64,000 nucleotides of DNA from Mytilus edulis (Eukaryota), in NCBI RefSeq assembly GCF_963676685.1, contig NC_092346.1:55428001-55492000 (forward strand). Reading direction: 5' to 3'. Shown in pieces: positions 24,222-46,863 of the stretch. The position numbers and the translations under genes were made by a program. Position 1 is the stretch's first letter. The number at the start of each line of letters is the position of its first letter. The notes beneath the pieces are model-generated. The model was not told the origin of the DNA, did no database searches, and was given only the letters and a program-made list of their open reading frames with translations.

Positions 24222-24770
24222 ATGGTTTGCTACGAGAACACTGTTTCCTGTGCCGTTGTTGGTGATGGAATGGTAGGCAAGACATGCCTTGCTAAAAGAT
24301 TTGCTGGAAACCAGTTATCTGAACAATATGTTGCTACAGTTGCAGAAACAACAACTGGATCTGTGTCTGCTTATGGTGACAAGTACAGCGTCAATATCTA
24401 TGAAGATCAATCAGCAAGATGCAAAACAATAACAGAAGCTGACGTCATTGTGGTATGCTACAGTGCAGTTGACAAAGAATCATTTGAAAACGTCAAATCC
24501 TTTTGGATTCCAATGGTCCGAAAACTAAATAAGAAGAAACCAATTGTTTTAGTCGCTACACATAGTGACATGCGTGATGAGAATAATACTGACCATGTAA
24601 CAGACACTGAAGGACAAAACTTTATGAAATCAATTAACGCTGACTATTACAACAAATGTTCTGCTGCTACAAACGAAGGAGTAAAGAATGTCTTCGAAAG
24701 TGTCGTCTGCGCCGCTATTAGATATAGAAAAAAGAAAACCAATGTGCTTAAACGTGTTTTCGCACGATGA
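24222..24770 (+). CDS. Gene 4: intronless Rho-like pseudo-GTPase lacking G3/switch II DxxGQ (182 aa)
   Basis: Single ORF; GDGMVGKT, YVAT, NIYEDQ where DTAGQ is expected, ATHSD, CSAA; tail KKKTNVLKRVFAR. Confidence 0.92.
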   Translation: MVCYENTVSCAVVGDGMVGKTCLAKRFAGNQLSEQYVATVAETTTGSVSAYGDKYSVNIYEDQSARCKTITEADVIVVCYSAVDKESFENVKSFWIPMVRKLNKKKPIVLVATHSDMRDENNTDHVTDTEGQNFMKSINADYYNKCSAATNEGVKNVFESVVCAAIRYRKKKTNVLKRVFAR

Positions 24771-27216
24771 ACTTGAACTTGTCTCTGCCCGGAGATAAAC
24801 ATTAACTACACAAATCTTGTGTAAAGAATAGCAAAACACTTGCTGTAAACAGACTTTGCGATAGAAGGAGATGGAGGTGGAATGTACCACTGGTGTACAT
24901 TCCGACAATGGATTAAAATATTGCTGTCGAATTACAGTGTTTGAGATGGAGAATAAGTAGTTCCGGTGATGTTCAAGGACATGAACTTAGAAAAACAATA
25001 TGAAATCAGTCATATTTATGAACTTTAAAGAGAAACGAATTGACTTAGTGAAAAGACACAAACAATACTTGTTTATTATTGTAAAGATGATAACAACAAT
25101 TACTTTAATTTATGTTTTAAAAATAAATTTTACGAAAAAAAATATTTGTTCTCTTAATATTTTATTGATTGTATATTGAAGGAATGACCTGTAAAGGTAT
25201 AAATACTACTTAGTTACAAGTTTAGACTTAAGTTCAAATAAGAATGATGTTGTATTGCATGAAGACATTGATAAAATAGAGACATCATGAATACTACTTC
25301 TCAGAGAAAAAAAGACGAAAAACAAACAACGGTCCAGTAAAGAATAAGTTGTACAGCACATTTTTAACACAAGTTTTAAGATCATAAAAAATTTACCCAA
25401 CCTATGACAATGCTTTAGGGTGAAACAGAATGCAAAAGTTACGAAAGGGACATTCAAAACACATAAATCAAAACTGAAAACACAATGGCAAAAACGAAAA
25501 TAAAAAACAAAAACCTAAGAAAGCTACATAACACATAGAAAACTAAAGAATAACATACACGAAACCCGTCGAAAAAAATTTGCTTAGGTTATGTTTATCC
25601 GAAATATATTAATTAGTCCTTTATCTGTATTTAAAAGGATTTTTTTATTGACCATGGTATACCTTCATCTTACATTAGTGTTTTCGAAGTTACAATTTAG
25701 TGATTGTGCTCATTAAAAATCACGAAATCTTTGTTGTAAACGACATGTCCTTTTAATCGACCAAACAATAATATGAAGCAAAAGTACCATTCGAAAATAG
25801 TAAAAAAGGAAGTTGAAATCATCATGATTTGTACTCAAATGTCACACCATATCAACAGAGAGGTATCAGTAAAGGTTTGGTGGTTCGCTCGTATTGTCAA
25901 AATTGTTATCTATCGGTTCAATCTCTATATATATTGAACAGAAAATAGAAAAAAGGAATTTCCTCCAGATTTTTCTTAAAAACCCATGTATAACGTTTTA
26001 CTATTCCTCAGTGTGTATTTGCACTTCTATAACGCACGATAACAATCAACGTCATCTTTGTTAAGTGATATGTATTTTTTTATAGAAAACTGCTGAAGCC
26101 TAAAACTCTATGTTGTTTTAATCAATCTGTTATACAAACCCAATAAGACAACGAAAAATTATAAATTGTACGACAAGTTTTTTATTTTCTTTTTTAGGCC
26201 CGGCGTTGTCAATTTTCTTTTCGAATTTTCTAGTCTGCATGTCCTTTTGGTATTCTTCGCTTTGCGTTGTTGTTATCGCTTAATAATTTTTATTAACGTG
26301 ATACGTGATCTGAAGAAATATTTTTTTTGTATATTGTTGTATTTTGTTAACATTTTGTTTTGAATATTCCCTTCGTATCTTTTGCCTATTTTTATTCCGA
26401 ATACCTGAACATTTTACATAGGTCTTGAGAAATGTTTCTCTATTTTAAACACAATTAAGCTGTCGTATGAACATCATATAATAGTAGATCATGACTTGGA
26501 ATTGATAAACCATTGGGACCATAAAATTTACGAAAAACTTAACAACCTTTATTTGAATTGGTAATCTTTTGTTGAGTTTTGATTTTTCATCTTGTTCATG
26601 AAGTATTCATGATGTTGTCTATAATGATGTGTTTTTATTTGCATTAAAAGCAAAGTGTGTTACCCAGTAACATTGATATTTTGTTTAAATATGAATATTT
26701 TTCATTGATTTTTATCAAAAATTAATTGACTGTAACAACCTTTACATGTCATTCCTTCAATGTATTGCGAGTACATATCAAACAAAATAAACACATTTTT
26801 TTTTATAAGATCATTTATTTTCATTATATAAATCACTGTTATTATTTTACAATAATATACAATAATAATTTGTGTCTTTTCACCATTTAAGTTTTTTTCT
26901 TCAAATTCATTCTCATAACTAATTTATAATGTTTTTCAATGAATTATTACGTTTCCCTTTAAGTTGATACTGATGACTGATTTCATATTGTTTTTGTAAG
27001 TTTGTGTCCTTGAACATCATCGGCACTACTTATTCTCCATCTCAATCACTGTAATTCGACATTAGTATTTCAATCCGTCTTTGGAATGTACACCAGTGGT
27101 ACATTCCATCTCCAACTCCTTTTATCTCAAAGTCTTTTGGTAGCAAAAGGTTTTGCTATTCTTAACACAAGATGTGTTTAGTAAATGTTTATCTCCGGGC
27201 AGAGATAAGTTCAAGT

Positions 27217-27765
27217 TCATCGTGCGAAAACACGTTTAAGCACATTGGTTTTCTTTTTTCTATATCTAATAGCGGCGCAGACGACACTTTCGAAGACATT
27301 CTTCACTCCCTCATTTGTAGCAGCAGAACATTTATTGTAATAGTCAGCATTTATTGATTTCATAAAGTTTTCTCCTTCAGCGTCTGATACATGATCGGTA
27401 TTGTTCTCATCACGCATGTCACTATGTGTAGCGACTAAAACAATTGGTTTCTTCTTATTGAGTTTTCGGACCATTGGAATCCAAAACGATTTGACGTTTT
27501 CAAATGATTCTTTGTCAACTGCACTGTAGCATACAACAATGACGTCAGCTTCTGTTATTGTTTTGCATCTTGCTGATTGATCTTCATAGATATTGACACT
27601 GTATTTGTCACCGTAAGCAGACACGGACCCAGTTGTTGTTTCTGCAACCGTAGCAACATATGTGTCTGAGAATTGGCTTCCAGCAAATCTTTTAGCAAGG
27701 CATGTCTTGCCTACCATTCCATCACCAACAACGGCACAGGAAACAGGGTTCTCTTGGCAAACCAT
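27217..27765 (-). CDS. Gene 5: intronless Rho-like pseudo-GTPase (182 aa)
   Basis: ATG at 27765 (the ORF-track start 27774 is TTG); near-identical to gene 4; TATA 27848-27854. Confidence 0.92.
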   Translation of the reverse strand: MVCQENPVSCAVVGDGMVGKTCLAKRFAGSQFSDTYVATVAETTTGSVSAYGDKYSVNIYEDQSARCKTITEADVIVVCYSAVDKESFENVKSFWIPMVRKLNKKKPIVLVATHSDMRDENNTDHVSDAEGENFMKSINADYYNKCSAATNEGVKNVFESVVCAAIRYRKKKTNVLKRVFAR

Positions 27766-28599
27766 TTTGTACAATTTCTGTTTAAAATCTTTAAACGTGA
27801 AATAAGCAAGTAGAAAAGTGTTATGCCAAATGTAAAATCTTCAGCCCTTTTATAGATCCCGAGTCGTTTGCCTGGATAATTCCATTGTTTATAAAGATCT
27901 CCTACTAAGAGAAGATTGTATTGTTTATAAATGACAACCCTGTGTGATCAAATTTACCCCCAAGTGTTTCAACCTAGATAACTCTCTCACTGCTTGTGGC
28001 TGAAATATGAAACGTTTTATTGTTTTATTTATAGCATTTTTCTCTTGCAGTTTTAGCTTAATGGAAACATTTCTTTGTTAACTTCATGTTATTGAACCTT
28101 AATTATGATGTTGTCTAGTTTTTCTTTGTTTTGATATTTGATAGTTTGTAAACTCGATGCAGTAAAACATAATACATTACCAGTAAGCAATACAGTAATG
28201 GGAAAGGAAAACACAAAACAGGGTGTTCTGTAATCATATAGTTTAAAAATATAGCAGACGTATAATTGATAAGTAAAACATAATCGGTACCAATTTTACT
28301 GTCCTTGGTGCACATTGCGACAATTACTGTTTCTGCAGTGATGCTCAAGACAAAAATATTTGTAAATCAAAAGCTTATACAAAACGGAACAACAGTATAG
28401 CAAAAATTTGTTATTCTAGTTTTTAGGTACATCAAAAGAAGTAATTTTACATACCGCATACTTCGTTTAAAAATTACAATATGTTGTCGAAAGTGAAGTT
28501 CCTTGCAAACCAGTCAAGAAGGAAAATAAATTATAAAGTCGAACTTTATAGACACTTATCGTAAACAATAGATGAAGCATTTTCTTCAAACAATTATTC

Positions 28600-28910
28600 A
28601 AGTCCAGTAGTCAGCACTTTTTGTGCTGACATAAATTATCATTGATATTGTTATATTTATAAATTAACCGTTTACAAAATTTTGAATTTTTTGAAATACT
28701 TCTAAGGCTTTTCTACCTCAGGCATAGATTACCTTAGCTGTATTTGGCAACACTTTTAGGAATTTTGGATCTCAAAGCTCTTCAACTTCATACTTTATTT
28801 GGCTTTTTTTAAAACTTTTTTGGATTCGAGCGTCACTGATGAGTCTTTTGTAGACGAGACGCGTGTCTGGCGTACATATAAAATTTAGTCCTGGTATCTA
28901 TGATGAGTAT
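28600..28910 (+). mobile_element. Hammerhead-bearing repeat (Penelope-like/retrozyme-type); core mutated
   Basis: GCGTCACTGATGAGTCTTTTGTAGACGAGACGCGTGTCTGGCGT at 28830-28873, GAAAC changed to GAGAC. Confidence 0.7.
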
Positions 28911-31361
28911 ATTAATATGAAAATGATGACTCTTTTACTATAGTTAATACACAATTTTGCTTACACTTCAAACTTCGAGTGGGTATCTATTCATTATTTA
29001 CTTGCCTTTGTTTTAAATGATTGTATCAGTCACACAGAAAGCTATTAAATGAATTGTTTTGATTTTGAGCAAAGAAACATATTCCCCACAGAGATATAAC
29101 AATAGGTGTAACATGAGGCGGCCTGGTGGTAATATTGTCAACACAAGGGACATATTGCGATATTTACATGTAATGGAACTTGGTTTCCTCTATATATAAA
29201 GCTTTGATACTTTGCTTTTTATAATACAAATCAAGTTTATCTAACTAGCTTGGATGAAAATTGTATGGAAATATTTGGATTAACAAGTGTATTTCTTGAT
29301 GTCTTGTGTGCGTAATTAAAATGCTGCAATGCATGTGGGGAAGTAAATACGATTTCATCAAAATGATTTCGCGATGATTTGGATATAAAACAACGTAAAA
29401 TGTCTAATATGACTTAACATTAGAATGAGGAAATTCACAGTGCCAAAGTGATACAGTAGATAAATATTTTTCTTTAATTGGATGTTATTTATGGATTTCC
29501 ACATAACGTTATGACTTTATTTGCATATTCTAGACATTTTTTAAAAAGGACCTAGTGCATGAAAAATAAATTTCAATTTCTCATATTTGTTATCTAGATT
29601 GTCAGGTGGTATATTTATTCTTTTTTTTTACTCAATTCACTGTAGCTTTTATTTTCCTTTACATTATGAAGGGTTCACGTAAATGGGATCGCTAATTAGG
29701 TTTAAGTGAACAATGTACCTAAATAGGAAAGGTTGTTGGTAATTTAATGAAAATAGATAATTTATGTAAGCCTAAGCTGCATTTGGTTTGAATTTCGATC
29801 GAAAATGAACTTGGATCATAATGAAAACCTTATACAATGTATTTGAGCAAAACGTTTTCTTCTGGTCATCATTTCAAAATTAATAAACGACTAAATAAAC
29901 CAGGTAAGAGCTCAAAAATATTCTTCCCTTTCGAGAAAATAGTCAGTTATACACATTAGGATTTGGAATATCAATAGTGGAAACGATTCAAAATCAGTAA
30001 AAGGAAGAATTCATTACTAATTATCATTTCATGTATCTGTGATATGTTATTCTGCAAAAAACAATCAATTCAGTCATTAGACAATAGGATCAGTTGTTGA
30101 ATAAAAAGCTGTTGCAAATGAAATCAAATATCAAATATATATTCTCACAGTAAATGCTTAAATAAATAGAATCAAATGGTACTTTTTGTTGTTTTCCTGT
30201 TTTATTTGTTAATATTAGTTGGTCAATGTTAGCCTTGAGAAACGTCTGGTTGCGTACATGGCAAATGTCTATTTAAAGTTTCCTGCTCCTTAATAAGGCA
30301 ATAATAGTATATCGGTGTAAATAACCTGCTTAAGAGGTTTTAGAGTCAAATTGATTGACATTTCTAGATGGCTTTTCAGACTGAATGTGCAGGTTGCTGT
30401 CTAAATGAGTTTGCCATATGCAATCTTTACTTTCTATTTGTAATGAACTTCTTATTTAAGTTAATCTACACATATATACAATCGGGCCCTTTCTATATTC
30501 CTTTGAAATGATTTACATTGTTATATACAGGCTTTATAGATGTCACTAGTATACTTTTTGGTTACATTTAAAGTAACATAGAGATGTAGCAGGAGTAGTT
30601 TACTTATGTTCAGCCCATTTTGAATACACAAACAAAGATACAAAAAATCTTTTAGTGTATCAATTGGATTTCTAAATTGAACGAAACCGGTGCGTTCAGA
30701 TGGTTTGACTCTGTAATGCAGGACTACTCTGCAATGTGAATCAAGACTTATTTAGATAGATCATACAAAATAAACTCATCATAGATATCAGGACTAAATT
30801 TTGTATATACGTCAGACGATCGGTTATTTTATTGATCACATTACAATACTGCTCATGGATTGAATACCGACAAACATGTTTCTAGTTAGTTGCAAAACAT
30901 AGCAAATGATGACAGGGTATATGATTTTTTTAAACGGAATGTAAAATCTAATTAAAGTGATATAGGAATAAGAAGATGTGGTATGATTGCCAATGAGACA
31001 AATTTCCATCCAAGTCACAATTTATAAAATAAAAACAGTATAGGTCTTCAACACGGAGCATATGCACACATATCGTCGACATTTTCCTGAGATTTACTCA
31101 GGGTCCGAAAGCTAAGATAACAGGATATCAGATAACCCAAACCTAATGTTTGAAATTTCTTTATTACTATTAAACTTATTAGTAAGAGTAGAACATATGT
31201 ATCATAGCCAACCCTTCTTCATTGAACAAACTTATCGATAAAAAGGAATATATATATTTTCCTTGGTATCTTTCTATCTTAAGTAACAACACAGTTATTA
31301 GCTACATTGCAAATTTAAGTGTTTCATTTAAAAACAAACTTTAATAGCGTTCGTTTCCGTA

Positions 31362-31530
31362 AATAGTTATCAAAGGTGTTAAAATTAGAATTTGATACGA
31401 TAGACACGCGTTTCGTCTTCATAAGACTCATCAGTGACGATCATATCAAAATAGTTATGAAGTCAAAAACGTACAAAAATGAAGAGCATTGAGGATTCAA
31501 AATTCCAAATCATTTGCCAAATACTGCTTA
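31362..31530 (-). mobile_element. Hammerhead-bearing repeat; core intact, stem I weakened
   Basis: Reverse strand CGTCACTGATGAGTCTTATGAAGACGAAACGCGTGTCTATCG at ~31397-31439. Confidence 0.7.
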
Positions 31531-32128
31531 GTAACGTTTCAAATGTCAATAATAGGGTCACTGCTTCTATAAAAAAAGACTACATTGCTGAAGACAGATG
31601 TGTTTTATTTTTCGAAGATGTGATCCGATATATTTGCTTGCATTTATAACTTATGACCTCTTATCGTGTGCAGTACAACATGTGCCATAAGTGAAGCAGG
31701 AACTGAGTTTATCTTTGGACTTTAAAGTATTTATGCTGATAACTCTTTGATAGTCTGAGTGTTATTTCTGAACTGCCGGATTTTTCTGTCTAAACTCAAG
31801 TTTTTCTTAAAGACATCTGATTTTTTTGCTCACTTGTTTTTTTCTTTTTCTTTAAAGATTACTGTTAAAATTAATATAAAAGGTTGAGATCTTACTATGA
31901 ACATCTTTTACATGATTTTCCCGGTTTCTTTGATCTATCTTTACATTGTGTATTTGATTCTATTAACATACCCGTAACACGTTATGCAACTAATGTGTTA
32001 ACAGGGAAAAAAATAGTATTTGGTAGTTAGTTGAAATACAGAAAATTTGTATGTGTTTGTCAACACTAGAACTAGCACTTACATTGTCTACAGTCTAGGT
32101 ATATGATAATAAAAGTAAACAAAGTTGT

Positions 32129-32311
32129 CAACTATACACAGAAAACAATGGCATAAATCAAACGATATCAATTTACACACAACAAGCAGTGAAATGATCA
32201 TATAGTTAGAACTCCAGGGGGGCTTATATGATTACATACATGCAAATATATAAACAATAGAATTTTCACTTTGCAGGAGATATTTTCAAACAATAGAAGA
32301 AACAGAGCGAT
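32129..32311 (+). promoter_or_regulatory. Orphan copy of the gene 4 upstream region with no downstream gene
   Basis: Colinear with 23941-24120 (ACAAGCAGTGAAAT...AGAACTCCAGGGGG...CACTTTGCAGGAGATATTTT...GAGCGAT); TATA and CDS absent. Confidence 0.7.
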
Positions 32312-33762
32312 AAATCTAAATTTAGATACACAACGTTATGATTTCAGTTTTGCAAAACATAGAATTTTCTTTTTCGTTGTGCCATATACATATCAGTCGA
32401 AAATAAAGTTTTAAGGCTTCTGAAGCGGTTTTGTCCACAACAATTTATCATGATTTTTAATAGACCCATTAACTTATGGTTAACCTGAGAAATGTGAGAT
32501 AAGATCTAAGCATACCAATGTCATTAGAAGTACCATAAGGTGAACACAGACAGACGAAAGACTGAAATCAGTCGGATAAATATAACCTGAGATTATCTCC
32601 ATTATTTGATGGAGTTTGTGTTATTAAGTGTCAAGTTTTCTAGATAGTATTTATTTGAGTTTTTTTAATTGTTGTATTTTTTATATGGTCTTGTCAGCTC
32701 TCATCATTGCATGAGAAAATTTAAAATCACAAATAAACTCCAAGAAAAATTAAACGAAGGTCTTTAATCAAATGGCAAAATCATAAGATAAAACACATTG
32801 AACGAATGGATAACAACTGTCATATTCCTGACTTGGTACACACCATTTTTTTATGTAGAAAATTGTGAATTGAACCTGGTTTTATAGCTTGCTAAACCTC
32901 TCACTTCTATAACAGTCGCATCAAATAATGAGAGTTTAATACACCTTCAGTATCTTCTTCATCTGTATTTTTTCTGATATATGAACATTTGACGTGTGTT
33001 GGATGTGAACTGAGTAATTTATCCACACATTAAAACAACTAGTGGATCTCGTCTATAATAATTGTTTTTGTTTTATTATAATGGGTTTCGAATATTGCAT
33101 GTTTTTCGTGGGTTTTTTTATGCCCTCCGACCGTTTTTAATGCTTCTCCTTCGACATGTAGTTGTATCCCATTTATATGTTTTTAATTGCTTTTAAATAA
33201 AAATCAAAGTTTTTCCCATTAACATTGATGTTTTGTTTCAATATGAAAACATTTCAATGATTTTCGTCAAAAATGTTACTGACTGTAACAACCTTTCATT
33301 CCTTTCACTGTATTATGAGTATATAGCAAACAAAATACATATTTTTCATATAAGATAATTTATTTTCATAATATAAATCACTGTTATCATTTTACAATAA
33401 TTAACAATAATAGTTTGTGTCTTTTCATCACTTCAGTTTTTTCTTCAAATTCATCATCATGACTAATTTGATATTGTTTTTCAATGAATTATTTCGTTTC
33501 TCATTAAGTTCAAACTGATGACTGATTTCACATTGTTTTTGTAAGTTTGTGTCCTTGCCCTTACTGGCACTACTTCTTCTTCATCTCACAATCACTGTAA
33601 TTCGACAGCAGCATTTCAATCCATCGTAGGAATGTACACCAGTGGTACATTCCATCTCCAACTCCTTCTATCTCAAAGTCTTTTGGTAGCAAAAGGTTTT
33701 GCTATTCTTAACACAAGATGTGTTTAGTAAATGTTTATCTCCGGGCAGAGATAAGTTCAAGT

Positions 33763-34311
33763 TCATCGTGCGAAAACACGTTTAAGCACATTGGTTTTCT
33801 TTTTTCTATATCTAATAGCGGCGCAGACGACACTTTCGAAGACATTCTTTACTCCTTCATTTGTAGCAGCAGAACATTTATTGTAATAGTCAGCATTTAT
33901 TGATTTCAAAAAGTTTTGTCCTTCAGCGTCTGATACATGGTCGGTATTATTCTCATCACGTTTGTCACTATGTGTAGCGACTAAAACAATTGGTTTCTTC
34001 TTATTGAGTTTTCGGACCATTGGAATCCAAAATGATTTGACGTTTTCAAATGATTCTTTGTCAACTGCACTGTAGCATACAACAATGACGTCAGCTTCTG
34101 TTATTGTTTTGCATCTTGCTGATTGATCTTCATAGATATTGACACTGTATTTGTCACCGTAAGCAGACACGGACCCAGTTGTTGTTTCTGCAACCGTAGC
34201 AACATATGTGTCTGAGAATTGGCTTCCAGCAAATCTTTTAGCAAGGCATGTCTTGCCTACCATTCCATCACCAACAACGGCACAGGAAACAGTGTTCTCT
34301 TGGCAAACCAT
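33763..34311 (-). CDS. Gene 6: intronless Rho-like pseudo-GTPase (182 aa)
   Basis: ATG at 34311; intact ORF; TATA 34394-34400. Confidence 0.92.
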   Translation of the reverse strand: MVCQENTVSCAVVGDGMVGKTCLAKRFAGSQFSDTYVATVAETTTGSVSAYGDKYSVNIYEDQSARCKTITEADVIVVCYSAVDKESFENVKSFWIPMVRKLNKKKPIVLVATHSDKRDENNTDHVSDAEGQNFLKSINADYYNKCSAATNEGVKNVFESVVCAAIRYRKKKTNVLKRVFAR

Positions 34312-35144
34312 TTTGTACAATTTCTGTTTAAAGTCTTTAAACGTGTAATAAATCAGTAGAAAAGTGTTATGCCAAATGTAAAATCGTCAGCCCTTTTATA
34401 GATCCCGAGTCGTTTGCCTGGATAATTCCATTGTTTATAAAGATCTCCTACTAAGAGAAGATTGTATTGTTTATAAATGACAACCCTGTGTGATCAAATT
34501 TACCCCCAAGTGTTTCAACCTGGATAACTCTCTCACTGCTTGTGGCTGAAATATGAAACGTTTTATTGTTTTTTTTATAGCATTTTTCTCTTGCAGTTTT
34601 AGCTTAATGGAAACATTTCTTTGTTAACTTCATGTTATTGAACCTTAATTATGATGTTGTCTAGTTTTTCTTTGTGTTGATATTTGATAGTTTGTAAACT
34701 CGATGCAGTAAAACATAATACATTACCAGTAAGCAGTACAGTAAGGGGAAAGGAAAACACAAAACAGGGTGTTCTGTAATCATATAGTTTAAAAATATAA
34801 CAGACGTATAATTAATAAGTAAAACATAATCGGTACCAATTTTACTGTCCTTGGTGCACATTGCGACAATTACTGTTTCTGCAGTGATGCTCAAGACAAA
34901 AATATTTGTAAATCAAAAGCTTATACAAAACGGAACAACAGTATAGCAAAAATTTGTTATTCTAGTTTTTAGGTACATCAAAAGAAGTAATTTTACATAC
35001 CGCATACTTCGTTTAAAAATTACAATATGCTGTCGAAAGTGAAGTCCCTTGCAAACCAGTCAAGAAGGAAAATAAATCATCAAGTCGAACTTTGGACACT
35101 CATGCATAAGCAATAGATGAAGCATTTTCTTCAAACAATTATTC

Positions 35145-35457
35145 AAGTCCAGTAGTCAGCACTTTTTGTGCTGACATAAATTATCATTGATATTGTTATA
35201 TTTATAAATTAACCGTTTACAAAATTTTGAATTTTTTAAAATACTACTAAGGCTTTTCTACCTCAGGCATAGATTATCTTAGCTGTATTTGGCAACACTT
35301 TTAGGAATTTTGGATCTCAATGCTCTTCAACTTCGTACTTTATTTGGCTTTTTTTTAAAAACTTTTTTGGATTCGAGCGTCACTGATGAGTCTTTTGTAG
35401 ACGAGACGCGCGTCTGGCGTATATATAAAATTTAGTCCTGGTATCTATGATGAGTAT
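35145..35457 (+). mobile_element. Hammerhead-bearing repeat (duplicate of 28600-28910)
   Basis: Motif at 35377-35420 with the same GAGAC change. Confidence 0.7.
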
Positions 35458-37917
35458 ATTAATATAAAAATGATGACTCCTTTACTATAGTTAATACACA
35501 ATTTTGCTTACACTTCAAACTTCGAGTGGGTATCTATTCATTATTTACTTGCCTTTGTTTTAAATGATTGTATCAGTCACACAGAAAGCTATTAAATGAA
35601 TTGTTTTGATTTTGAACAAAGAAACATATTCCCCACAGAGATATAACAATAGGTGTAACATGAGGCGACCTGGTGGTAATATTGTCAACACAAGGGACAT
35701 ATTGCGATATTTACATGTAATGGAACTTGGTTTCCTCTATATATAAAGCTTTGATACTTTGCTTTTTATAATACAAATCAAGTTTATCTAAGTAGCTTGG
35801 ATGAAAATTTTATGGAAATATTTGGATTAACAAGTGTATTTCTTGATGTCTTGTGTGCGTAATTAAAATGCTGCAATGCATGTGGGAAAGTAAATACGAT
35901 TTCATCAAAATGATTTCGAGATGATTTGGATATAAAACAACGTAAAATGTCTAGTATTCTTTACATAAGAATGAGGAAATTCACAGTACCAAAGTGATAC
36001 AGTAGATAAATATTTTTCTTTAATTGGATGTTATTTCTGGATTTCCACATAACGTTATGACTTTATTTGCATATTCTAGACATTTTTTAAAAAGGACCTA
36101 GTGCATGAAAAATAAATTTCAATTTCTCATATTTGTTATCTAGATTGTCAGGTGGTATATTTATTCTTTTTTTTTTATTCAATTCACTGTAGCTTTTATT
36201 TTCCTTTACATTATGAAGGGTTCACGTAAATGGGATCGCTAATTAGGTTTAAGTGAACAATGTACCTTAATAGGAAAGGACTTTGGTAATTTAATGAAAA
36301 CAGATAATTTATGTAAGCCCAAGCTGCATTTGGTTTGAATTTCGATCGAAAATGAACTTGGATCATAATGCAAACCTTATACAATGTATTTGAGCAAAAC
36401 TTTTTCTTCTGGTCATCATTTCAAAATTAATAAACGACTAAATAAACCAGGTAAAAGCTCAAAAATATTCTTCCCTTTCGACAAAATAGTCAGTTATACA
36501 CATTAGGATTTGGAATATCAATAGTGGAAACGATTCAAAATCAATGAAAGGAAGAATTCATTACTAATTATCATTACATGTATCTGTGATATGTTATTCT
36601 GCAGAAAACAATCAATTCAGTCATTAGACAATAGGATCAGTTGTTGAATAAAAAGCTGTTGCAAATGAAATCAAATATCAAATATACATTCTTACAGTAA
36701 ATGCTTAAATAAATAGAATCAAATGGTACTTTTTGTTGTTTTCCTTTTTTATTTGTTAATATTAGTTGGTCAATGTTAGCCTTGAGAAACGTCTGGTTGA
36801 GTACATGGCAAATGTCTACTTAAAGTTTACTGCTCCTTAATAAGGCAATAGTAGTATATCGTTGTAAATAACCTGCTTAAGAGGCTTTAGAGTCAAATTG
36901 ATTGACATTTCTAGATGGCTTTTCAGACTGAATGTGCAGGTTGCTGTCTAAATGAGTTTGCCATATGCAATCTTTACTTTCTATTTGTAATGAACTTCTT
37001 ATTTAAGTTAATCTACACATATATACAATCGGGCCCTTACTATATTCCTTTGGAAATGATTTACATTTTGATATACAGGCTCCGTTACGTTAGCTATATA
37101 GATGTCACTAGTATACGTTTTGATTATATTTAAAGTGACATAGAGATGTAGCAGGAGTAGTTTACTTATGTTCAGCCCATTTTGAATACACAAACAAAAA
37201 ATCTTTTAGTGTATCAATTGGATTTCTAAATTAAATGAAACCGGTGCGTTCAGATGGTTTGATTCTGTAATGCAGGACTACTCTGCAAAGTGAATCAAGA
37301 CTTACTTAGATAGTTCATACAAAATAAACTCATCATAGATATCAGGACTATTTTATATCTACGCCAGACGATCGGTTATTTTATTGATCACAGTACAATA
37401 CTGCTCATGGATTGAATACCGACAAACATGTTTCTAGTTAGTTGCAAAACATAGCAAATGATGACAGGGTATATGGTGTTTTTAAACGGAATGTAAAATC
37501 CAATTAAAGTGATATAGGAATAAGAAGATGTGGTATGATTGCCAATGAGACAAATCTCCATCCAAGTCACAATTTATAAAATAAAAACAGTATAGGTCTT
37601 CAACACGGAGCATATGCACACATATCGTCGACATTTTCCTGAGATTTACTCCAAACAGGGTCCGAAAGCTAAGATAACAGGATATCAGATAACCCAAACC
37701 TAATGTTTGAAGTTTCTTTATTACTATTAAACTTATTAGTAAGAGTAGAACATATGTATCATAGCCAACCCTTCTTCATTGAACAAACTTATCGATAAAA
37801 AGGAATATATATATTTTCCTTGGTATCTTTCTATCTTAAGTAACAACACAGTTATTAGCTACACTGCAAATTTAAGTGTTTCATTTAAAAACAAACTTTA
37901 ATAGCGTTCGTTTCCGT

Positions 37918-38082
37918 AAATAGTTATCAAAGGTATTAAAATTAGAATTTAATACGATAGACGCGCGTTTCGTCTTCAAAAGACTCATCAGTGACGATCA
38001 TATCAAAATAGTTATGAAAAACGTACAAAAATGAAGAGCATTGAGGATTCAAAATTCCAAATCATTTGCAAAATACTGCTTA
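37918..38082 (-). mobile_element. Hammerhead-bearing repeat (duplicate of 31362-31530)
   Basis: Reverse strand CTGATGAGTCTTTTGAAGACGAAACGCGCGTC at ~37959-37990. Confidence 0.7.
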
Positions 38083-38680
38083 GAAACGTTTCAAATGTCA
38101 ATAATAGGGTCACTGCTTCTATAAAAAAGACTACATTGCTGAAGACAGATGTGTTTCATTTTTCGAAGCTGTGATCCGATATATTTGCTTGCATTTATAA
38201 CTTATGACCTCTTATCGTGTGTAATACAACATGTGCCATAAGTGAAGCAGGAACTGAGTTTATCTTTGGACTTTAAAGTATTTATGCTGATAACTCTTTG
38301 ATAGTCTGCGTGTTATTTCTGAACTGCCAGATTTTTCTGTCTAAACTCAAGTTTTTTCTTAAAGGCATATGATTTTTTTGCTCACTTGTTTTTTTCTTTT
38401 TCTTTAAAGATTACTGTTAAAATTAATATAAAAGGTTGAGATCTTACTATGAACATCTTTTACATGATTTTCCCGGTTTCTTTGATCTATCTTTACATTG
38501 TGTATTTGATTCTATTAACATACCCGTAACACTTTATGCAACTAATGTGTTAACAGGGAAAAAAATAGTATTTGGTAGTTAGTTGAAATACAGAAAAGTT
38601 GTATGTGTTTGTCAACACTAGAACTAGCACTTACATTGTCTACAGTCTAGGTATATGATACTAAAAGTAAACAAAGTTGT

Positions 38681-38863
38681 CAACTATACACAGAAAACAA
38701 TGGCATAAATCAAACGATATCAATTTACACACCACAAGCAGTGAAATGATCATATAGGTAGAACTCCAGGGGGGGCTTATATGATCACATACATGCAAAT
38801 ATATAAACAATAGAATTTTCACTTTGCAGGAGATATTTTCAAACAAAAGAAGAAACAGAGCGA
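38681..38863 (+). promoter_or_regulatory. Orphan copy of the gene 4 upstream region
   Basis: Duplicate of 32129-32311. Confidence 0.7.
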
Positions 38864-40350
38864 TAAATCTAAATTTAGATACACAACGTTATGATTTCAG
38901 TTTTGCAAAACATAGAATTTTCTTTTTCGTTGTGCCATATACATATCAGTCGAAAATAAAGTTTAAAGGCTTCTGAAGCGGTTTTGTCCACAACAATTTA
39001 TCATGATTTTTAATAGACCCATTAACTTATGGTTAACCTGAGAAATGTGAGATAAGATCTAAGCATACCAATGTCATTAGAAGTACCATAAGGTGAACAC
39101 AGACAGACGAAAGACTGAAATCAGTCGGATAAATATAACCTGAGATTATCTCCATTATATGAGAGAGTTTGTCTTATTAAGTATCTAGTTTTCTATGTAG
39201 TATTTAGTTGAGTTTTTTAATTGTTGTATTTTTTTATATGGTCTTGTCAGCTCTCATCATTGTATGAGAAAATTTAAAAATCACAAATAAACTCCAAGAA
39301 AAATTCAAAACGAAGGTCTTTAATCAAATGACAAAATCATAAGATAAAACACATTGAACGAATGGATAACAACTGTTATATTCCTGACTTGGTACACACA
39401 TTTGTTTATGTAGAAAATTGTGGATTGAACCTGGTTTTATAGCTTGCTAAACCTCTCACTTCTATAACAGTCGCATCAAATAATGAGAGTTTAATACACC
39501 TTCAGTATCTTCTTCATCTGTATTTTTTCTGATATATGAATATTTGACATGTGTTGGATGTGAACTGAGTAATTTATCCACACATTAACACAACTAGTGG
39601 ATCTCGTCTATAATAACAGAGAACACCTAAGTTAACCATAACCTGAATTGTTTTTGTTTTATTATATTGGGTTTGGAATATTGCATGTTTTTCGTGGGTT
39701 TTTTTATGACCTCCGACCGTTTTTAATGCTTCTCCTTCAACAAGTAGTTGTATCCCATTTATACGTTTTTAATTGCTTTTAAATAAAAATCAAAGTTTTT
39801 CCCATTAACATTGATGTTTTGTTTCAATATGAAAACATTTCAATGATTTTCGTCCATAATGTTACTGACTGTAACAACCTTTCGTTCCTTTCAATGTATT
39901 ATGAGGGATATAGCAAACAAAATACATATTTTTCATATAAAATAATTTAATTTCATAACATAAATCACTGTTATCATTTTACAATAATTAACAATAATAA
40001 TTTGTGTCTTTTCATCACTTAAGTTTTTTCTTCAAATTCATCATCATGACTAATTTGATATTGTTTTTCAATGAATTATTTCGTTTCTCATTAAGTTCAA
40101 ACTGGTGACTGATTTCACATTGTTTTTGTAAGTTCGTGTCCTTGCCCATCACCGGCACTACTTCTTCTTCGTCTCACAATCACTGTAATTCGACAGCAGC
40201 ATTTTAATCCATCGTAGGAATGTACACCAGTGGCACATTCCATCTCCAACTACTTCTATCTCAAAGTCTTTTGGTAGCAAAAGGTTTTGCTATTCTTAAC
40301 ACAAGATGTGTTTAGTAAATGTTTATCTCCGGGCAGAAATAAGTTCAAGT

Positions 40351-40899
40351 TCATCGTGCGAAAACACGTTTAAGCACATTGGTTTTCTTTTTTCTATATC
40401 TAATAGCGGCGCAGACGACACTTTTGAAGACATTCTTTACTCCTTCATTTGTAGCAGCAGAACATTTATTGTAATATTCAGCATTTATTGATTTCATAAA
40501 GTTTTGTCCTTCAGCGTCTGATACATGGTCGGTATTGTTCTCATCACGTTTGTCACTATGTGTAGCGACTAAAACAATTGGTTTCTTCTTATTGAGTTTT
40601 CTGACCATTGGAATCCAAAACGATTTGACGTTTTCAAATGATTCTTTGTCAACTGCGCTGTAGCATACCACAATGACGTCAGCTTCTGTTATTGTTTTGC
40701 ATCTTGCTGATTGATCTTCATAGATATTGACGCTGTATTTGTCACCGTAAGCAGACACAGATCCAGTTGTTGTTTCTGCAACTGTAGCAACATATTGTTC
40801 AGCGAACTGGCTTCCAGCAAATCCTTTAGCAAGGCATGTCTTGCCTACCATTCCATCACCAACAACGGCACAGGAAACAGTGTTCTCGTAGCAAACCAT
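40351..40899 (-). CDS. Gene 7: intronless Rho-like pseudo-GTPase (182 aa)
   Basis: Intact ORF; TATA 40981-40987. Confidence 0.92.
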   Translation of the reverse strand: MVCYENTVSCAVVGDGMVGKTCLAKGFAGSQFAEQYVATVAETTTGSVSAYGDKYSVNIYEDQSARCKTITEADVIVVCYSAVDKESFENVKSFWIPMVRKLNKKKPIVLVATHSDKRDENNTDHVSDAEGQNFMKSINAEYYNKCSAATNEGVKNVFKSVVCAAIRYRKKKTNVLKRVFAR

Positions 40900-41887
40900 T
40901 TTTTGAATTTCTGTTTTAAATCTTTAAACGTGAAATAAGCAAGTACAAAAGTGATATGCCAAATGTAAAATCTTCACCCCTTTTATAGATCCCCAGTCGT
41001 TTGCCTGGATAAATCCATTGTTTATAAAGATCTCCTACTAAGTGAAGATTCTATTGTTTAAAAATGACAACTCTGTGTAATCAAATATACCCCCAAGTGT
41101 TTAAACCTTGAAACCTCTCTCACTGCTTGTGGCTGAAATATAAAACTTTTTATTGTTTTATTTTTAGCAATTTGGTATTGCAATTTTAGCTAAAAGGAAA
41201 CAACTCTTTGTTATTGAACATTATGATTTTGTCTCGTTTAATTTGTTTTGATATTTGATAGTTCGTCAATTCGATGCAGAAAAAAACCCATAGTACATAC
41301 ATGATACAGAAAAATGGTGGTACTTTTAGAAAATAGAACATTGTTGACGACAGATTTTTTGTAGCCATGATCCCATATATTGTCCTGCATTGGTGACTTA
41401 TAATTCCAAAAATATTGTGTGCAATACTACATGCGGAATGAGTGAAGCAGGAACTCGTTATTTTTTGGGTTATGAAAGTTTTACAAATCTTAAGGTTATC
41501 TGATATTTTGTTACACCGTCATTTTTTTCTTTCTTTCTAAAACCATTTATACAAACATATGATTTTTACTGCTCACTTGCTATTTCCTAATTCTATTTCT
41601 CGTGTTGTTCTTTTGATTACTTAATACTGTCTACATAGATAATAAATTTTAAGAACTTACTATGAATATCTTAAAGGGGACATTTCTTGTTTCTTGAATG
41701 TCTTTCCATTGTGTATTTTGTTCTGATAACTTATATTTAACATATTGTACAACATGGTTTAACAAAAATAATATGTACTTAGCCGAAAGTTAAAAAAGAC
41801 AGAATTGTTATTTGTTTGTCAAAACTTGTATTAGTACTTAGATTGTCTTCATTGTAAATATATTATACTAAAAGTAAACAAAATTAT

Positions 41888-42125
41888 CACTTACACACAA
41901 CTAACAATGAAATAAATAAAACAATATCAATTTACACACCAAAAGCCGTGACATGGTCATATAGTATAACTCCAGGGGGCTAATACAATCACATACATAC
42001 GAATTTATAGACAATAGAATTGTCACTTTGCAGGAGATATTTGTCAAACAATAGAAGCAACAGAGCGATCCACCTATGTTCTGTAAGGGTCATCCAGCTG
42101 AAAATATCTCACAAAATATTTGTCG
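41888..42125 (+). promoter_or_regulatory. Orphan gene-4-type promoter with decayed TATA
   Basis: CTCCAGGGGG, TTGTCACTTTGCAGGAGAT, GAGCGATC then GTTCTGTAAGGG where gene 4 has GTTCTATAAAAG. Confidence 0.65.
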
Positions 42126-43334
42126 TTCTAATGCATTTTTTTGTAACATTTTATTTTCATTGAAATTTTGATACATCACATTATGATTTCAGTTTCCACA
42201 CTTCAAATTTTCTATTTCGGAGTGGCATATGGCTATCGGTCAAAATTAAAGTATGGTTGCTTCTAAGGAAGTTTTGTCCACAACAAAGATTTCATGATTT
42301 TGAACAGGCAACTTCACTGATTCTGACTTCAAGATAAGATGAAAGTATGCCAATGAAAATAGAATTGTCTCTAGAACCATGCTGGTACAGAAAGATGAAG
42401 GACTGATATAAGTGGGATACACATAACTCGAGATGACCCATGTTTTGGTGGAGTTTGTGTTGCTCGGTCTTTTTTTCTATGTCATTCTTTGATAACTAGT
42501 TTGTCTTTTTGTCGTTTGTTCTTTTTAGCCATGACGATGCTAGTTTCTTAAGTGTTTTATATCCGCTTCGCATCTTCTATCTCTTTTTGGTTATGCCTTA
42601 TATGTGAACATTTGTCATAGGTGTTGAAACAAATTGCAATATTTTATAATATGTGTTGATAATGTACAGAACAAATAAATCGAACGTTATAAAACGAGTG
42701 GACATTGACCGGGAATTGCTTAACCAATTGGAGCACAAACATTTTAAACATTGTATCCGCAACCTGTATTTTACTTTGTGATTTTTTTATGTACTTTGTT
42801 TTTGTTGTTTCGTCTTTTTTTATGAGTGTTCATTGTGTTGTATCCAGTAATATTGTTGTTTTGTTTCAATTGGTATACTTTCCATCGATTTGTATCAAAA
42901 GCTTACTGACTGTAAGAACTGTTACATGTCATCCCTGTAGTATATCATAAGTAAATGGTTAACACAACAAATCATTTTCATGTAAGATAATTTATTCAAA
43001 CAACAAAAATTAAAGTAATACAATAATATACAAGTATTGGTTGTGTCTTTTCAACATATAAGTTTTTTTCTCTTAAAGTTTATCATCGTAATTAATTTCA
43101 CATTGTTTTTGTAACTGTTTGTCCTTGAACATCACCGGCACCACTTATTCTCCATCTCAATCACTGTAATTCGACAGCAGTATTTCAATCCGTCTTTGGA
43201 ATGTACACCAGTGGTACATTCCATCTCCAACTCCTTCTTTCTCAAAGTCATTTGACAGCAAGTATTTTGCTATTTGGACACATTTGAAGATGTGTAAAGT
43301 ATAGGTTTATCTCCGGGCAGAGATAAGTTCAAGT

Positions 43335-43883
43335 TCATCGTGCGAAAATACGTTTAAGCACATTGGTTTTCTTTTTTCTATATCTAATAGCGGCGCAGAC
43401 GACACTTTCGAAGACATTCTTTACTCCCTCATTTGTAGCAGCAGAACATTTATTGTAATAGTCAGCATTTATTGATTTCATAAAGTTTTGTCCTTCAGCG
43501 TCTGATACATGGTCGGTATTGTTCTCATCACGCATGTCACTATGTGTAGCGACTAAAACAATTGGTTTCTTCTTATTTATTTTTCTGACCATTGGAATCC
43601 AAAACGATTTGACGTTTTCAAATGATTCTTTGTCAACTGTACTGTAGCATACAACAATGACGTCAGCTTCTGTTATTGTTTTGCATCTTGCTGATTGATC
43701 TTCATAGATATTGACGCTGTATCTGTCACCGTAAGCAGACACAGATCCAGTTGTTGTTTCTGCAACCGTAGCAACATATTTGTCTGAGAATTGGTTTCCA
43801 GCAAATCTTTTAGCAAGGCATGTCTTGCCTACCATTCCATCACCAACAATGGCACAGGAAACAGTGTTCTCGTAGCAAACCAT
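43335..43883 (-). CDS. Gene 8: intronless Rho-like pseudo-GTPase (182 aa)
   Basis: Intact ORF; TATA 43965-43971. Confidence 0.92.
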   Translation of the reverse strand: MVCYENTVSCAIVGDGMVGKTCLAKRFAGNQFSDKYVATVAETTTGSVSAYGDRYSVNIYEDQSARCKTITEADVIVVCYSTVDKESFENVKSFWIPMVRKINKKKPIVLVATHSDMRDENNTDHVSDAEGQNFMKSINADYYNKCSAATNEGVKNVFESVVCAAIRYRKKKTNVLKRIFAR

Positions 43884-44877
43884 GTTTTCAATTTCTGTTT
43901 TAAATCTTTAAACGTGCAATAAGTCAGTAGAAAAGTGTTATGCCAAATGTAAAATCTTCAGCCCTTTTATAGATCCCGAGTCGTTTGCCTGGATAAATCC
44001 ATTGTTTATAAAGATCTCCTACTAAGAGAAGATTCTATTGTTTATAAATGACAACCCTGTGTGATCAAATTTACCCCCAAGTGTTTCAACCTTGAAACCT
44101 CTCTCACTGCTTGTGGCTGAAATATGAAACGTTTTATTGTTTTATTTTTAGCAATTTGGTATTGCAATTTTAGCTAAAAGGAAACAATTCTTTGTTATTA
44201 AACATTAAGATTTTGTCTCGTTTTATTTGTTTTGATATTTGATAGTTCGTAAATTCGATGCAGAAAAACCCATAGTACATACATGATACAGAAAAATGGT
44301 GGTACTTTTAGAAAATAGTACATTGTTGACGACAGATCTACTCTATCTTTTGTAGCCATGATCCCATATATTGTCCTGCATTGGTGACTTATAATTCCAT
44401 AAATATTGTGTGCAATACTACATGCGGAATGAGTGAAGCAGGAACTCGTTATTTTTTGGGTTATGAAAGTTTTACAAATCTTAAGGTTATCTGATATTGT
44501 GTTACACCGTCATTTTTTTCTTTCTTTCTAAAACCATTTATACAAACATATGATTTTTACTGCTCACTTGCTATTTCCTAATTCTATTTCTCGTGTTGTT
44601 CTTTTGATTACTTAATACTGTCTACATAGATAATAAATTTTAAGAACTTACTATGAATATCTTAAAGGGGACATTTCTTGTTTCTTGAATGTCTTTCCAT
44701 TGTGTATTTTGTTCTGATAACTTATATTTAACATATTGTACAACATGGTTTAACAAAAATAATATGTACTTAGCCGAAAGTTAAAAAAGACAGAATTGTT
44801 ATTTGTTTGTCAAAACTTGTACTAGTACTTAGATTGTCTTCATTGTAAATATATTATACTAAAAGTAAACAAAATTA

Positions 44878-45115
44878 TCACTTACACACAACTAACAATG
44901 AAATAAATAAAACAATATCAATTTACACACCAAAAGCCGTGACATGGTCATATAGTATAACTCCAGGGGGCTAATACAATCACATACATACGAATTTATA
45001 GACAATAGAATTGTCACTTAGCAGGAGATATTTGTCAAACAATAGAAGCAACAGAGCGATCCACCTATGTTCTGTAAGGGTCATCCAGCTGAAAATATCT
45101 CACAAAATATTTGTC
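44878..45115 (+). promoter_or_regulatory. Orphan gene-4-type promoter with decayed TATA
   Basis: Duplicate of 41888-42125. Confidence 0.65.
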
Positions 45116-46314
45116 GTTCTAATGCATTTTTTTGTAACATTTTATTTTCATTGAAATTTTGATACATCACATTATGATTTCAGTTTCCACACTTCAAATT
45201 TTCTATTTCGGAGTGGCATATGGCTATCGGTCAAAATTAAAGTATGGTTGCTTCTAAGGAGGTTTTGTCCACAACAAAGATTTCATGATTTTGAACAGGC
45301 AACTTCACTGATTCTGACTTCAAGATAAGATGAAAGTATGCCAATGACAATAGAATTGTCTCTAGAACCATGCTGGTACAGAAAGATGAAGGACTGATAT
45401 AAGTGGGATACACATAACTCGAGATGACCCATGTTTTGGTGGAGTTTGTGTTGCTCGGTCTTTTTTTCTATGTCATTCTTTGATAACTAGTTTGTCTTTT
45501 TGTCGTTTGTTCTTTTTAGCCATGACGATGCCAGTTTCTTAAGTGTTTTATATCCGCTTCGCATCTTCTATCTCTTTTTGGTTATGCCTTATATGTGAAC
45601 ATTTGTCATAGGTGTTGAAACAAATTGCAATATTTTATAATATGTGTTGATAATGTTCAGAACAAATAAATCGAACGTTATAAAACGGGTGGACATAGAC
45701 CGGGAATTGCTTAACCAATTAGAGCACAAACATTTTAAACATTGTATCCGCAACCTGTATTTTACTTTGTGATTTTTTATGTACTTTGTTTTCGTTTTTT
45801 TCATCTTTTTGTATGAGTTTTCATTTTGTTGTACCCAGTAAAATTGTTGTTTTGTTTCAATCGGTATATTTTTCTTCGATTTGTATCAAAAGCTTACTGA
45901 CTGTAAGAACTGTTACATGTCATCCCTTCAGTATATCAAAAGTAAAATGGTTAACAAAACAAATCATTTTCATGTAAGATAATTTATTCAAACAACATAA
46001 ATTAATGTTATACAATAATATACAAGTATTGGTTGTGTCTTTTCAACATATAAGTTTATTTCTCTTTAAGTTCATCATCGTAATTAATTTCACATTGTTT
46101 TTGTAAGTTCGTGTCCTTGAACATCACCAGATCCACTTATTCTCCATCTCAATCACTGTAATTCGACAGGTCTTTGGAATGTACACCAGTGGTACATTCC
46201 ACCTCCAACTACTTCTATCTCAAAAGTCTTTTTACAGCAAGTATTTTGCTATTTTTGACACATTTTAAGATGTGTAAAGTATAGGTTTATCTCCGGGCAG
46301 AGACAAGTTCAAGT

Positions 46315-46863
46315 TCATCGTGCGAAAACACGTTTAAGCACATTGGTTTTCTTTTTTCTGTATTTAATAGCGGCGCAGACGACACTTTCGAAGACATTCT
46401 TTACTCCTTCGTTTGTAGCAGCAGAACATTTATTGTAATAGTCAGCATTTATTGATTTCATAAAGTTTTGTCCTTCAGCGTCTGATACATGGTCGGTATT
46501 ATTCTCATCACGTTTGTCACTATGTGTAGCGACTAAAACAATTGGCTTCTTCTTATGGAGTTTTCTGACCATTGGAATCCAAAAGGATTTGACGTTTTCA
46601 AATGATTCTTTGTCAACTGCACTGTAGCATACAACAATGACGTCAGCTTCAGTTATTGTTTTGCATCTTGCTGATTGATCTTCATAGATATTGACGCTGT
46701 ATTTGTCACCGTAGGCAGACACAGATCCAGTTGATGTTTCTGCAACTGTAGCAACATATTGTTCAGCAAACTGGCTTCCAGCAAATCTTTTAGTAAGGCA
46801 TGTTTTGCCTACCATTCCATCACCAACAACGGCACAGGAAACAGTGTTCTCGTTGCAAACCAT
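46315..46863 (-). CDS. Gene 9: intronless Rho-like pseudo-GTPase (182 aa)
   Basis: Intact ORF; TATA 46950-46956; upstream region diverged but keeps CTCCAGGGG (47057-47066). Confidence 0.92.
   Translation of the reverse strand: MVCNENTVSCAVVGDGMVGKTCLTKRFAGSQFAEQYVATVAETSTGSVSAYGDKYSVNIYEDQSARCKTITEADVIVVCYSAVDKESFENVKSFWIPMVRKLHKKKPIVLVATHSDKRDENNTDHVSDAEGQNFMKSINADYYNKCSAATNEGVKNVFESVVCAAIKYRKKKTNVLKRVFAR

Follow-up and report, generated by a model that had tools for sequence, protein, structure and literature searches.

A conserved array of intronless Cdc42-like genes in Mytilus lacking the core of switch II: candidate non-cycling pseudoGTPases

What can a Rho-type GTPase still do once the core of its switch II has been taken out? 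The question is raised by a 64,000-nucleotide stretch of the Mytilus edulis genome (assembly GCF_963676685.1, contig NC_092346.1, positions 55,428,001 to 55,492,000; hereafter the window, whose own numbering is used throughout), in which six intronless genes, numbered 4 to 9, encode Cdc42-like proteins without the G3 motif DxxGQ. Few features of P-loop GTPases are as constant as DxxG, and the known GTPase-dead Rho proteins lose their activity by point substitution. We propose that the six proteins are nucleotide-binding, non-cycling pseudoGTPases governed by their expression, and that they form a Mytilus-specific intronless branch of a mussel Cdc42-related subfamily, a reading to which we assign a probability of roughly 0.55.

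All six open reading frames (ORFs), of 182 codons each, are intact, one on the forward and five on the reverse strand, in DNA that is A+T-rich (~31% G+C); in-frame TTG extensions on two of them are not needed. Each protein contains GDGMVGKT (G1), YVATV with the switch-I threonine, YSVNIYEDQSAR, THSD (G4) and CSA (G5), and each matches the Pfam Ras profile (PF00071; E = 2e-26 to 8e-27, residues 11-163 on profile positions 3-158 of 162), so that the intact frames and retained motifs of the original prediction are borne out. Differences from copy to copy fall mostly at third codon positions. Genes 1, 2 and 10 are canonical paralogs in which a phase-0 GT-AG intron lies immediately 3' of the Gln codon of the motif (DTAGQ/FED, DTNGQ/HED and DSSGQ/HDY, respectively); genes 1 and 2 entered the alignments and trees as joined-exon models. 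Their predicted length of 188 residues, set against 182 for the six, is right for genes 1 and 2, but gene 10 comes to 189 residues by its exon coordinates. At least 12 more two-exon paralogs are spread over ~320 kb of the same chromosome, and no further full-length intronless copy was found elsewhere in the genome assembly. DxxGQ is absent from the six, from the neighbouring gene 3 and from 68 related sequences; genes 1, 2 and 10 have it, as do the other cluster paralogs, and it is kept in all other paralogs checked in the M. edulis genome.

Where was the motif lost? Its loss had been presented as a trait of the six intronless genes, a view that cannot be upheld. Gene 3, which bears an intron, has already lost DxxGQ: its exon 1 ends NLNIHE and runs into gtaaac, and its exon 2 starts HEEKSTRLQ. 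With gene 3 included, the window holds seven G3-less genes, six of them intronless as claimed. In this genome gene 3 is a pseudogene, with a 1-nt frameshift in exon 1, a P-loop reading GDEMVGKT (Gly to Glu) and a G4 motif in which QS has become KI (TKID). Its orthologs in M. galloprovincialis, M. edulis and M. coruscus (P0006, P0058, P0059) are intact proteins of 184 residues reading NIHE-HEEKS, the M. edulis reference protein being 99.5% identical to that of M. galloprovincialis, and the broken copy here looks like a decaying allele or a polymorphism of the presence/absence type.

The same loss is found in many intron-bearing genes of a second mussel lineage, whose gene 2 ortholog is 72% identical to that of Mytilus and whose unspliced G3-less gene calls come from ENA, JGI and Logan assemblies. 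NI[NHQ]E closes at least 10 distinct exon 1 sequences, which run on into gta.., matching exon 2 sequences begin HEEQ, NEEK or YDEQ, and a 912-nt contig, probably a transcript, holds the exact spliced 184-residue ORF (NINE-HEEQ). Intron-bearing G3-less genes of this mussel are themselves clustered (P0232, P0242, P0257 and P0269 on a 51-kb contig; P0218, P0246 and P0268 on a 144-kb contig), and the subfamily has therefore undergone an independent expansion outside Mytilus. Our trees place all the G3-less sequences together in a single group next to gene 2, which is the closest canonical paralog, and within that group the Mytilus array is a well-supported subgroup (99/98). To judge by these sequences, the motif loss predates the six and arose in an intron-bearing gene.

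What was removed can be read from a gapless alignment of gene 2 (Y-S-V-N-L-K-D-T-N-G-Q) with gene 3 (Y-N-L-N-I-H-E). HMMER pairs Glu61 of the six with Asp57 of Cdc42, and among the 68 distinct G3-less sequences a Glu follows beta-3 in every one and DxxG occurs in none. The loss is best read as T-x-G-Q gone and Asp57 exchanged for an invariant Glu. Both changes could have come about in a single event, the in-frame removal of 12 bp where exon 1 ends, which would convert GA[T ACA AAT GGT CA]G followed by gt into GAG followed by gt or, in general form, GA[T ACN NNN GGN CA]G into GAG. A deletion rather than a substitution had been predicted, and this stands for Gly60 and Gln61, which are physically absent; the Asp that serves the Mg-bound water, also counted as lost, was probably replaced by the Glu at its aligned position. 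In M. californianus and M. coruscus the array copies read NIYE-HE/LE/NE-DQSAR and have 184-185 residues, the precise spliced product. Every copy in the M. edulis complex, including the six, has lost one further x-E unit (6 bp, from 184 to 182 residues). Because Gly60 and Gln61 are absent and not substituted, a canonical switch II and canonical hydrolysis appear implausible in the six proteins.

Does the fold survive the cut? An AlphaFold2 model (predicted local distance difference test score 89.4, predicted template modelling score 0.86) has six strands and five helices in canonical order, with beta-3 (residues 53-60) tied to a short alpha-2 (66-72) by five residues, and its confidence drops only at switch I and at this beta-3/alpha-2 link. 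In Foldseek the top 50 matches are all Rho-family chains, with template modelling (TM) scores of ~0.8 to Rho, Rac and Cdc42; the structure prediction against Cdc42 that had been suggested as a check thus finds the whole G fold kept. Cdc42 is also the best sequence match among solved structures (E = 1e-27, ~33% identity). Retention of the G fold in the model, together with deletion of the hydrolysis residues Gly60 and Gln61, makes the six predicted pseudoGTPases. Across the non-truncated sequences of the G3-less clade, the P-loop is kept in 63 of 63, T[QH]SD in 55 of 56 and CS[AS] in 59 of 59.

The label "Rho-like" is accordingly apt by sequence and structural similarity, but it does not extend to the insert, most of which is missing, or to the CAAX box, which is absent. 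A Rho-specific insert helix between G4 and G5 is a defining Rho feature (PMC4669188); here the insert is 9 residues shorter than in Cdc42, and no helix is modelled from residue 114 to residue 127. Every copy terminates in KRVFAR or KRIFAR, the C-terminus being a long basic helix RYRKKKTNVLKRVFAR and the protein ending ..RKKKTNVLKRVFAR, and the effector-loop core reads AETT in the six versus FDNY in Cdc42. The family is Cdc42-like in descent and fold, yet it fails three defining Rho features (insert, CAAX and G3).

Are such truncated proteins under selection? Their nearest relatives are all from the genus Mytilus (96-99% identity in M. edulis and M. galloprovincialis, 93% in M. trossulus, 91-92% in M. 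californianus), and M. coruscus copies fall in the same 90% clusters. The 29 array proteins of six Mytilus species are 91-99% identical, and their variable columns are mostly singletons. Each of the five species other than M. edulis has 4-6 copies, with consecutive accessions after the gene 3 ortholog; since gene 3 is followed by the array in these genomes as it is here, the array is syntenic and no younger than the genus. Among the six, the ratio of nonsynonymous to synonymous substitution (dN/dS, Nei-Gojobori) is 0.13-0.47 for pairs, with a mean of 0.22 (codon-bootstrap confidence interval 0.12-0.39); none of 2000 bootstrap replicates reached 1, and Fisher p is 1e-7 to 2e-3 for the deeper pairs. 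Their dN of 0.026 is ~6x below the divergence of the 3' untranslated region (3'UTR). Omega is 0.36 in the N-terminal 60 codons versus 0.14 in the remainder, and dN/dS gives no sign of positive selection in either part of the six coding sequences. In exon 2, identity between Mytilus and the other mussel is 78-80% for the G3-less gene-3 type and 71-72% for canonical gene 2. Motif loss, on this evidence from sequence comparison, did not relax constraint. The original prediction had taken the six for selected genes, and the purifying dN/dS together with the arrays in five other species agrees with this; the dosage amplification that it proposed is plausible.

How might the proteins work? We propose that they retain the capacity to bind guanine nucleotide together with Mg2+, using the P-loop, switch-I Thr, invariant Glu, G4 and G5, but that without Gly60 and Gln61 they would neither sense the gamma-phosphate through switch II nor hydrolyse GTP in the canonical way. 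They would then act as non-cycling binding modules in the manner of Rnd and RhoH, held at the membrane probably by the polybasic C-terminal helix, and their control would lie in the level of expression (TATA promoter, structured 3'UTR and copy number) and not in guanine nucleotide exchange factors (GEFs) or GTPase-activating proteins (GAPs). That nucleotide is still bound would be the most economical assumption, because G1, G4 and G5 are near-invariant and nucleotide-free pseudoGTPases lose such motifs (PMC12490416, PMC10211241).

Several points weigh against this proposal or against the history that goes with it. Nucleotide binding and missing hydrolysis are both deduced from motifs, and unconventional residues for Mg binding or catalysis could in principle come from the E-D-Q stretch that follows beta-3. 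The copies are intronless, so database contigs cannot tell transcript from DNA. The single 12-bp deletion is one parsimonious option, and the order in which a precise intron loss would have preceded the 6-bp loss is read from protein models of the M. californianus and M. coruscus copies.

One alternative is that nucleotide binding has been abolished altogether and that the G fold serves only as a protein-binding module, as in CENP-M or the pG1/pG2 domains of p190RhoGAP, an established kind of pseudoGTPase (class i; PMC12490416, PMC10211241). The G3 (Walker-B) region is needed for Mg2+ coordination and gamma-phosphate contact, and its core is missing here; the change from FDNY to AETT in the switch-I effector core would fit such a protein as well. 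Set against this, G1, G4 and G5 are near-invariant over 60-odd sequences and two mussel lineages, while the known nucleotide-free forms have lost G motifs, and an acidic residue is retained at the Asp57 position, which would be difficult to account for without a bound nucleotide. We therefore consider a nucleotide-free module unlikely.

It is also conceivable that the proteins are working switches of an unconventional type, in which Glu61, Asp62 and Gln63 of the Y-E-D-Q stretch, or a partner residue in trans, replace Asp57, Gly60 and Gln61. Some GTPases do use non-canonical catalytic residues, HMMER sets Glu61 opposite Asp57 of Cdc42, and Gln63 is invariant in the 29 array proteins. This Gln is not kept over the G3-less clade, however, since gene-3-type proteins read HEEKS, NEEKS or HEEQT; there is no Gly for the gamma-phosphate contact, and every canonical relative listed has a longer beta-3/alpha-2 link, by 4-6 residues. 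A functional switch of this kind is likewise an unlikely explanation.

How did the array come about? Some 370 nt before the ATG are homologous between gene 3 and the six (~79% identity, with several conserved blocks), reaching past the TATA box, and islands in the 3'UTR are also common to them. We read the array as tandem DNA duplicates that lost their single intron and not as classical retrocopies, because the promoter of gene 3 is shared and a processed transcript would not carry upstream sequence. A G3-less intron-bearing gene would have been duplicated in tandem, promoter included, and would then have lost its sole intron by recombination with cDNA or by exact deletion; expansion to 4-6 copies would have occurred before or during the Mytilus radiation. 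Gene conversion has since evened out the copies, with the further two residues lost throughout the M. edulis complex.

Classical processed retrogenes, derived from a gene-3-type mRNA that was reverse-transcribed, inserted nearby and tandemly duplicated, would account for intronless copies beside an intron-bearing parent and for the 184-residue forms of M. californianus and M. coruscus, whose sequence is the one expected after exact splicing. Genes 4 and 5 have short A runs 13-18 nt past the poly(A) signal, as a retrogene might leave them, but these are only 4-9 nt long, as chance gives in 70% A+T DNA. Target-site duplications were not seen, and homology to gene 3 extends ~280 nt upstream of the TATA box at the identity of the coding part (~79%), which makes such an origin rather improbable. 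A retrocopy spliced through a cryptic donor 18 nt upstream was rejected: no GT is found there, gene 3 lost the motif with its intron in place, and the promoter is shared. Intron loss through deletion between two CATGA repeats is less likely than the precise loss proposed above, as NIYE-HE/LE-DQSAR, the sequence in the copies of M. californianus and M. coruscus, is what exact splicing would give, and an array-type exon 1 fragment running into an intron was not found.

The array appears not to have evolved as independent copies since then. At least two copy types already existed when M. californianus and M. coruscus separated from the M. edulis complex, and the gene 9 type (MVCN..CLTK) has orthologs in all six Mytilus species (85/86 support). 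Variable sites among the six form a mosaic that fails the four-gamete test. For genes 4 and 9 the promoters stand at K ~0.5 from the others, set against a third-position p of 0.07-0.13 in the coding sequences, in keeping with the diverged flanks that had been noted for these two genes. Because the 6-bp loss occurs in every M. edulis-complex copy, the variable sites are mosaic and the promoters are far more diverged than the coding parts, these comparisons show ongoing gene conversion over the coding and 3' parts.

Could the array be something more specialized? That it represents a new class of small G protein, locked on nucleotide by excision of switch II, serving as a dosage-tuned competitor or decoy for Rho regulators or pathogen factors, with its copies kept alike by concerted evolution, is a possibility to which we give little credence. 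We give less still to an immune decoy, that is, an array acting as sponge or bait for Rho-modifying bacterial toxins or host Rho regulators. The circumstantial case is that equivalents of switch-I Tyr32 and Thr35 are kept while Gln61 is gone, that the array is multi-copy, and that an expanded "Rho GTPase" orthogroup appears among bivalve stress and immune families (PMC8382680). Genuine Rho targets differ from the six in effector loop, Rho insert and C-terminus, so mimicry would be poor, and selection is purifying, not diversifying, with omega of 0.14-0.36 across both halves; the decoy, GEF-sponge and toxin-bait roles that had been suggested thus find no support. Drifting non-functional young duplicates or assembly artefacts are scarcely credible, even though mussel genomes are rich in copy-number variation and gene 3 is broken in this one, given six of six ORFs open in 31% G+C DNA, invariant promoter boxes and poly(A) signals, a dN/dS of 0.22 and orthologous arrays in five other independently assembled species, the last two of which rule out chance ORFs, artefacts and decaying duplicates alike.

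How do the mussel proteins compare with known systems? They share with Cdc42 and TC10 the G-domain fold, a GDGxVGKT P-loop, the Tyr32 and Thr35 equivalents, a TQxD-type G4 and a CSA G5; unlike Cdc42 and TC10 they have neither DxxGQ nor CAAX, their insert is shorter by the 9 residues noted above, and AETT stands for FDNY. They are not orthologs of Cdc42, the mussel genes falling in a bivalve-specific clade. The top structural match of the model is Rho1 of Entamoeba histolytica (PDB 3reg; TM 0.80-0.84, root-mean-square deviation 1.7 A, 26% identity), a Rho protein without the insert helix, which, unlike the mussel proteins, is a working GTPase with G3 intact and CAAX present. In the RGK proteins (Rad, Gem, Rem) G3 is non-canonical and without Gly-Gln, the lipid anchor is missing and the C-terminus carries a basic extension; they bind nucleotide without classical switching. 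In these respects they would resemble the mussel proteins, and they differ in belonging to the Ras branch, in their long N- and C-terminal extensions and in a G3 whose length is normal (DxWE).

The nearest parallel to the proposed mode of action is found in Rnd1/Rnd3 and RhoH. Members of this group have Rho-type G domains predicted to be unable to hydrolyse GTP and are likely controlled by expression as opposed to GEF/GAP cycling (PMC2565660, PMC10211241). Their changes are substitutions (Gly12 to Ser; Gln61 to Asn in RhoH), with DxxG, insert and CAAX kept. In the mussel proteins, by contrast, Gly12 remains, Gly60 and Gln61 are deleted, CAAX is missing and the insert is short; they show no orthology to Rnd or RhoH, their nearest relatives being found in bivalves only. 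The N-terminal pseudoGTPase domain of p190RhoGAP and CENP-M also have a G fold, have given up catalysis and act by binding (PMC10211241, PMC5593906). CENP-M and pG1/pG2 belong to other lineages and have lost all G motifs and nucleotide; the mussel proteins keep G1, G4 and G5.

Table 1. Positions of the G3-less genes, their canonical neighbours and associated elements in the window.
Feature	Position	Strand	Details
Gene 4, G3-less Cdc42-like intronless ORF	24222-24770	+	182 aa
Gene 5, intronless copy	27217-27765	-	ATG at 27765; 182 aa
Gene 6, intronless copy	33763-34311	-	ATG at 34311; 182 aa
Gene 7, intronless copy	40351-40899	-	182 aa
Gene 8, intronless copy	43335-43883	-	182 aa
Gene 9, intronless copy	46315-46863	-	182 aa; N-terminal signature MVCN..CLTK
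Gene 3, intron-bearing G3-less relative	18386-19138	-	Exon 1 19138-18957, intron 18956-18758 (199 nt), exon 2 18757-18386
Gene 1, canonical paralog	3126-4034	+	Exon 1 3126-3320 (DTAGQ, then gtacgt), exon 2 3663-4034; 188 aa
Gene 2, closest canonical paralog	15115-15819	-	Exon 1 15819-15625 (ends KDTNGQ, then gtatga), exon 2 15486-15115 (starts HEDEHTR); 188 aa
Gene 10, canonical paralog	54194-55724	-	Exon 1 55724-55524 (DSSGQ, then gttagt), exon 2 54562-54194 (HDYKEV..); 189 aa
Gene 4 promoter and 5' untranslated region	23980-24221	+	TATAAAA at 24133-24139
TATA boxes of the other G3-less genes	gene 5 27854, gene 6 34400, gene 7 40987, gene 8 43971, gene 9 46956, gene 3 19224	-	86-93 nt before ATG
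Gene 4 3'UTR	24771-25130	+	~330 nt conserved among the six; AATAAA at +352

The elements around the coding sequences (Table 1) are as regular as the ORFs. An invariant CTATAAAAG stands 86-93 nt upstream of every ATG of the six, in accord with the TATA box already predicted, and a poly(A) signal, AATAAA or ATTAAA, follows every stop by 327-400 nt. Two hairpins mark the 3'UTR. The first, TTGTCTC-TGCCCG-GAGATAA at 24779-24798 (+) in gene 4, lies 9-14 nt past the TGA stop and recurs at the same place in genes 5-9 and in gene 1 (4043-4068), with the loop TGCCCG conserved. Its stem has compensated changes between old paralogs (AAGTCTC/GAGACTT in gene 1, TTATCTC/GAGATAA in genes 5, 6 and 8), one different base in gene 7 and a G-U pair in genes 4 and 9; the hairpin is weaker in genes 2 and 3 and absent from gene 10. 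The second is a perfect 9-bp hairpin, GGAATGTAC-N7-GTACATTCC, found ~120-145 nt past the stops in all six 3'UTRs (for example, 24885-24915) and partly in gene 3. No Rfam family matched anywhere in the window, the first hairpin included.

In the promoters of the six and of gene 3 we also observed a forkhead-like core, TTTATAAACAAT(A/G)G, present twice, and a block CTTGGGGGTAAATTTGATCACACAG, both conserved; upstream of genes 5-8 these elements lie at about -130 to -180 from the ATG (for example, 44010-44070 on the reverse strand). Units are spaced at ~3.0 kb in genes 7-9 and at ~6.5 kb in genes 5-7. The gene 5-6 and 6-7 units are lengthened by ~3.4 kb of extra sequence at ~28180-31570 and ~34730-38120, which has no ORF of at least 90 codons and is possibly a transposon. 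A short repeat with three copies encoding nearly the same peptide (MVVTYKRSPKLSQSMNDFNVSINGHSYTVLNFILL), at 4823-4960 (-), 21393-21548 (-) and 21792-21983 (+), is probably a dispersed element.

How new is the finding? A 2015 survey of bivalve Rho genes recognized nine classical subfamilies only (PMC4669188), and neither that paper nor PMC8382680 mentions a G3-less family or the missing motif. Our literature search found no paper that notes the missing motif or cites the array's public accession numbers. To call this an undescribed system, as the original prediction did, is nevertheless too strong, since the genes are annotated as CDC42-like in six public proteomes, under labels such as "CDC42", "cdc42 homolog" and "Ras homolog family member Q". 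Both GTPase-dead Rho proteins and pseudoGTPases were known before; what is new is a conserved and amplified subfamily with the core of switch II cut out.

What does this mean for the Ras fold and for the mussels that carry it in this form? The Gly-Gln core has been physically removed and yet selection has held, through at least two mussel lineages, with amplification into an array besides. The subfamily is thus a natural experiment on what a protein of the Ras fold can do without switch II, and it provides a set of sequences in which the survival of nucleotide binding can be addressed. The locus is a clean case of stepwise remodelling, in which motif loss would have been followed by intron loss and then by a further 6-bp loss, and it exemplifies both concerted evolution in a tandem array and the misleading names that databases can confer, all copies being called CDC42 or RhoQ. 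While its practical weight is modest for now, it indicates that a mussel Cdc42 relative may be retained, and multiplied, as a G domain that no longer switches.

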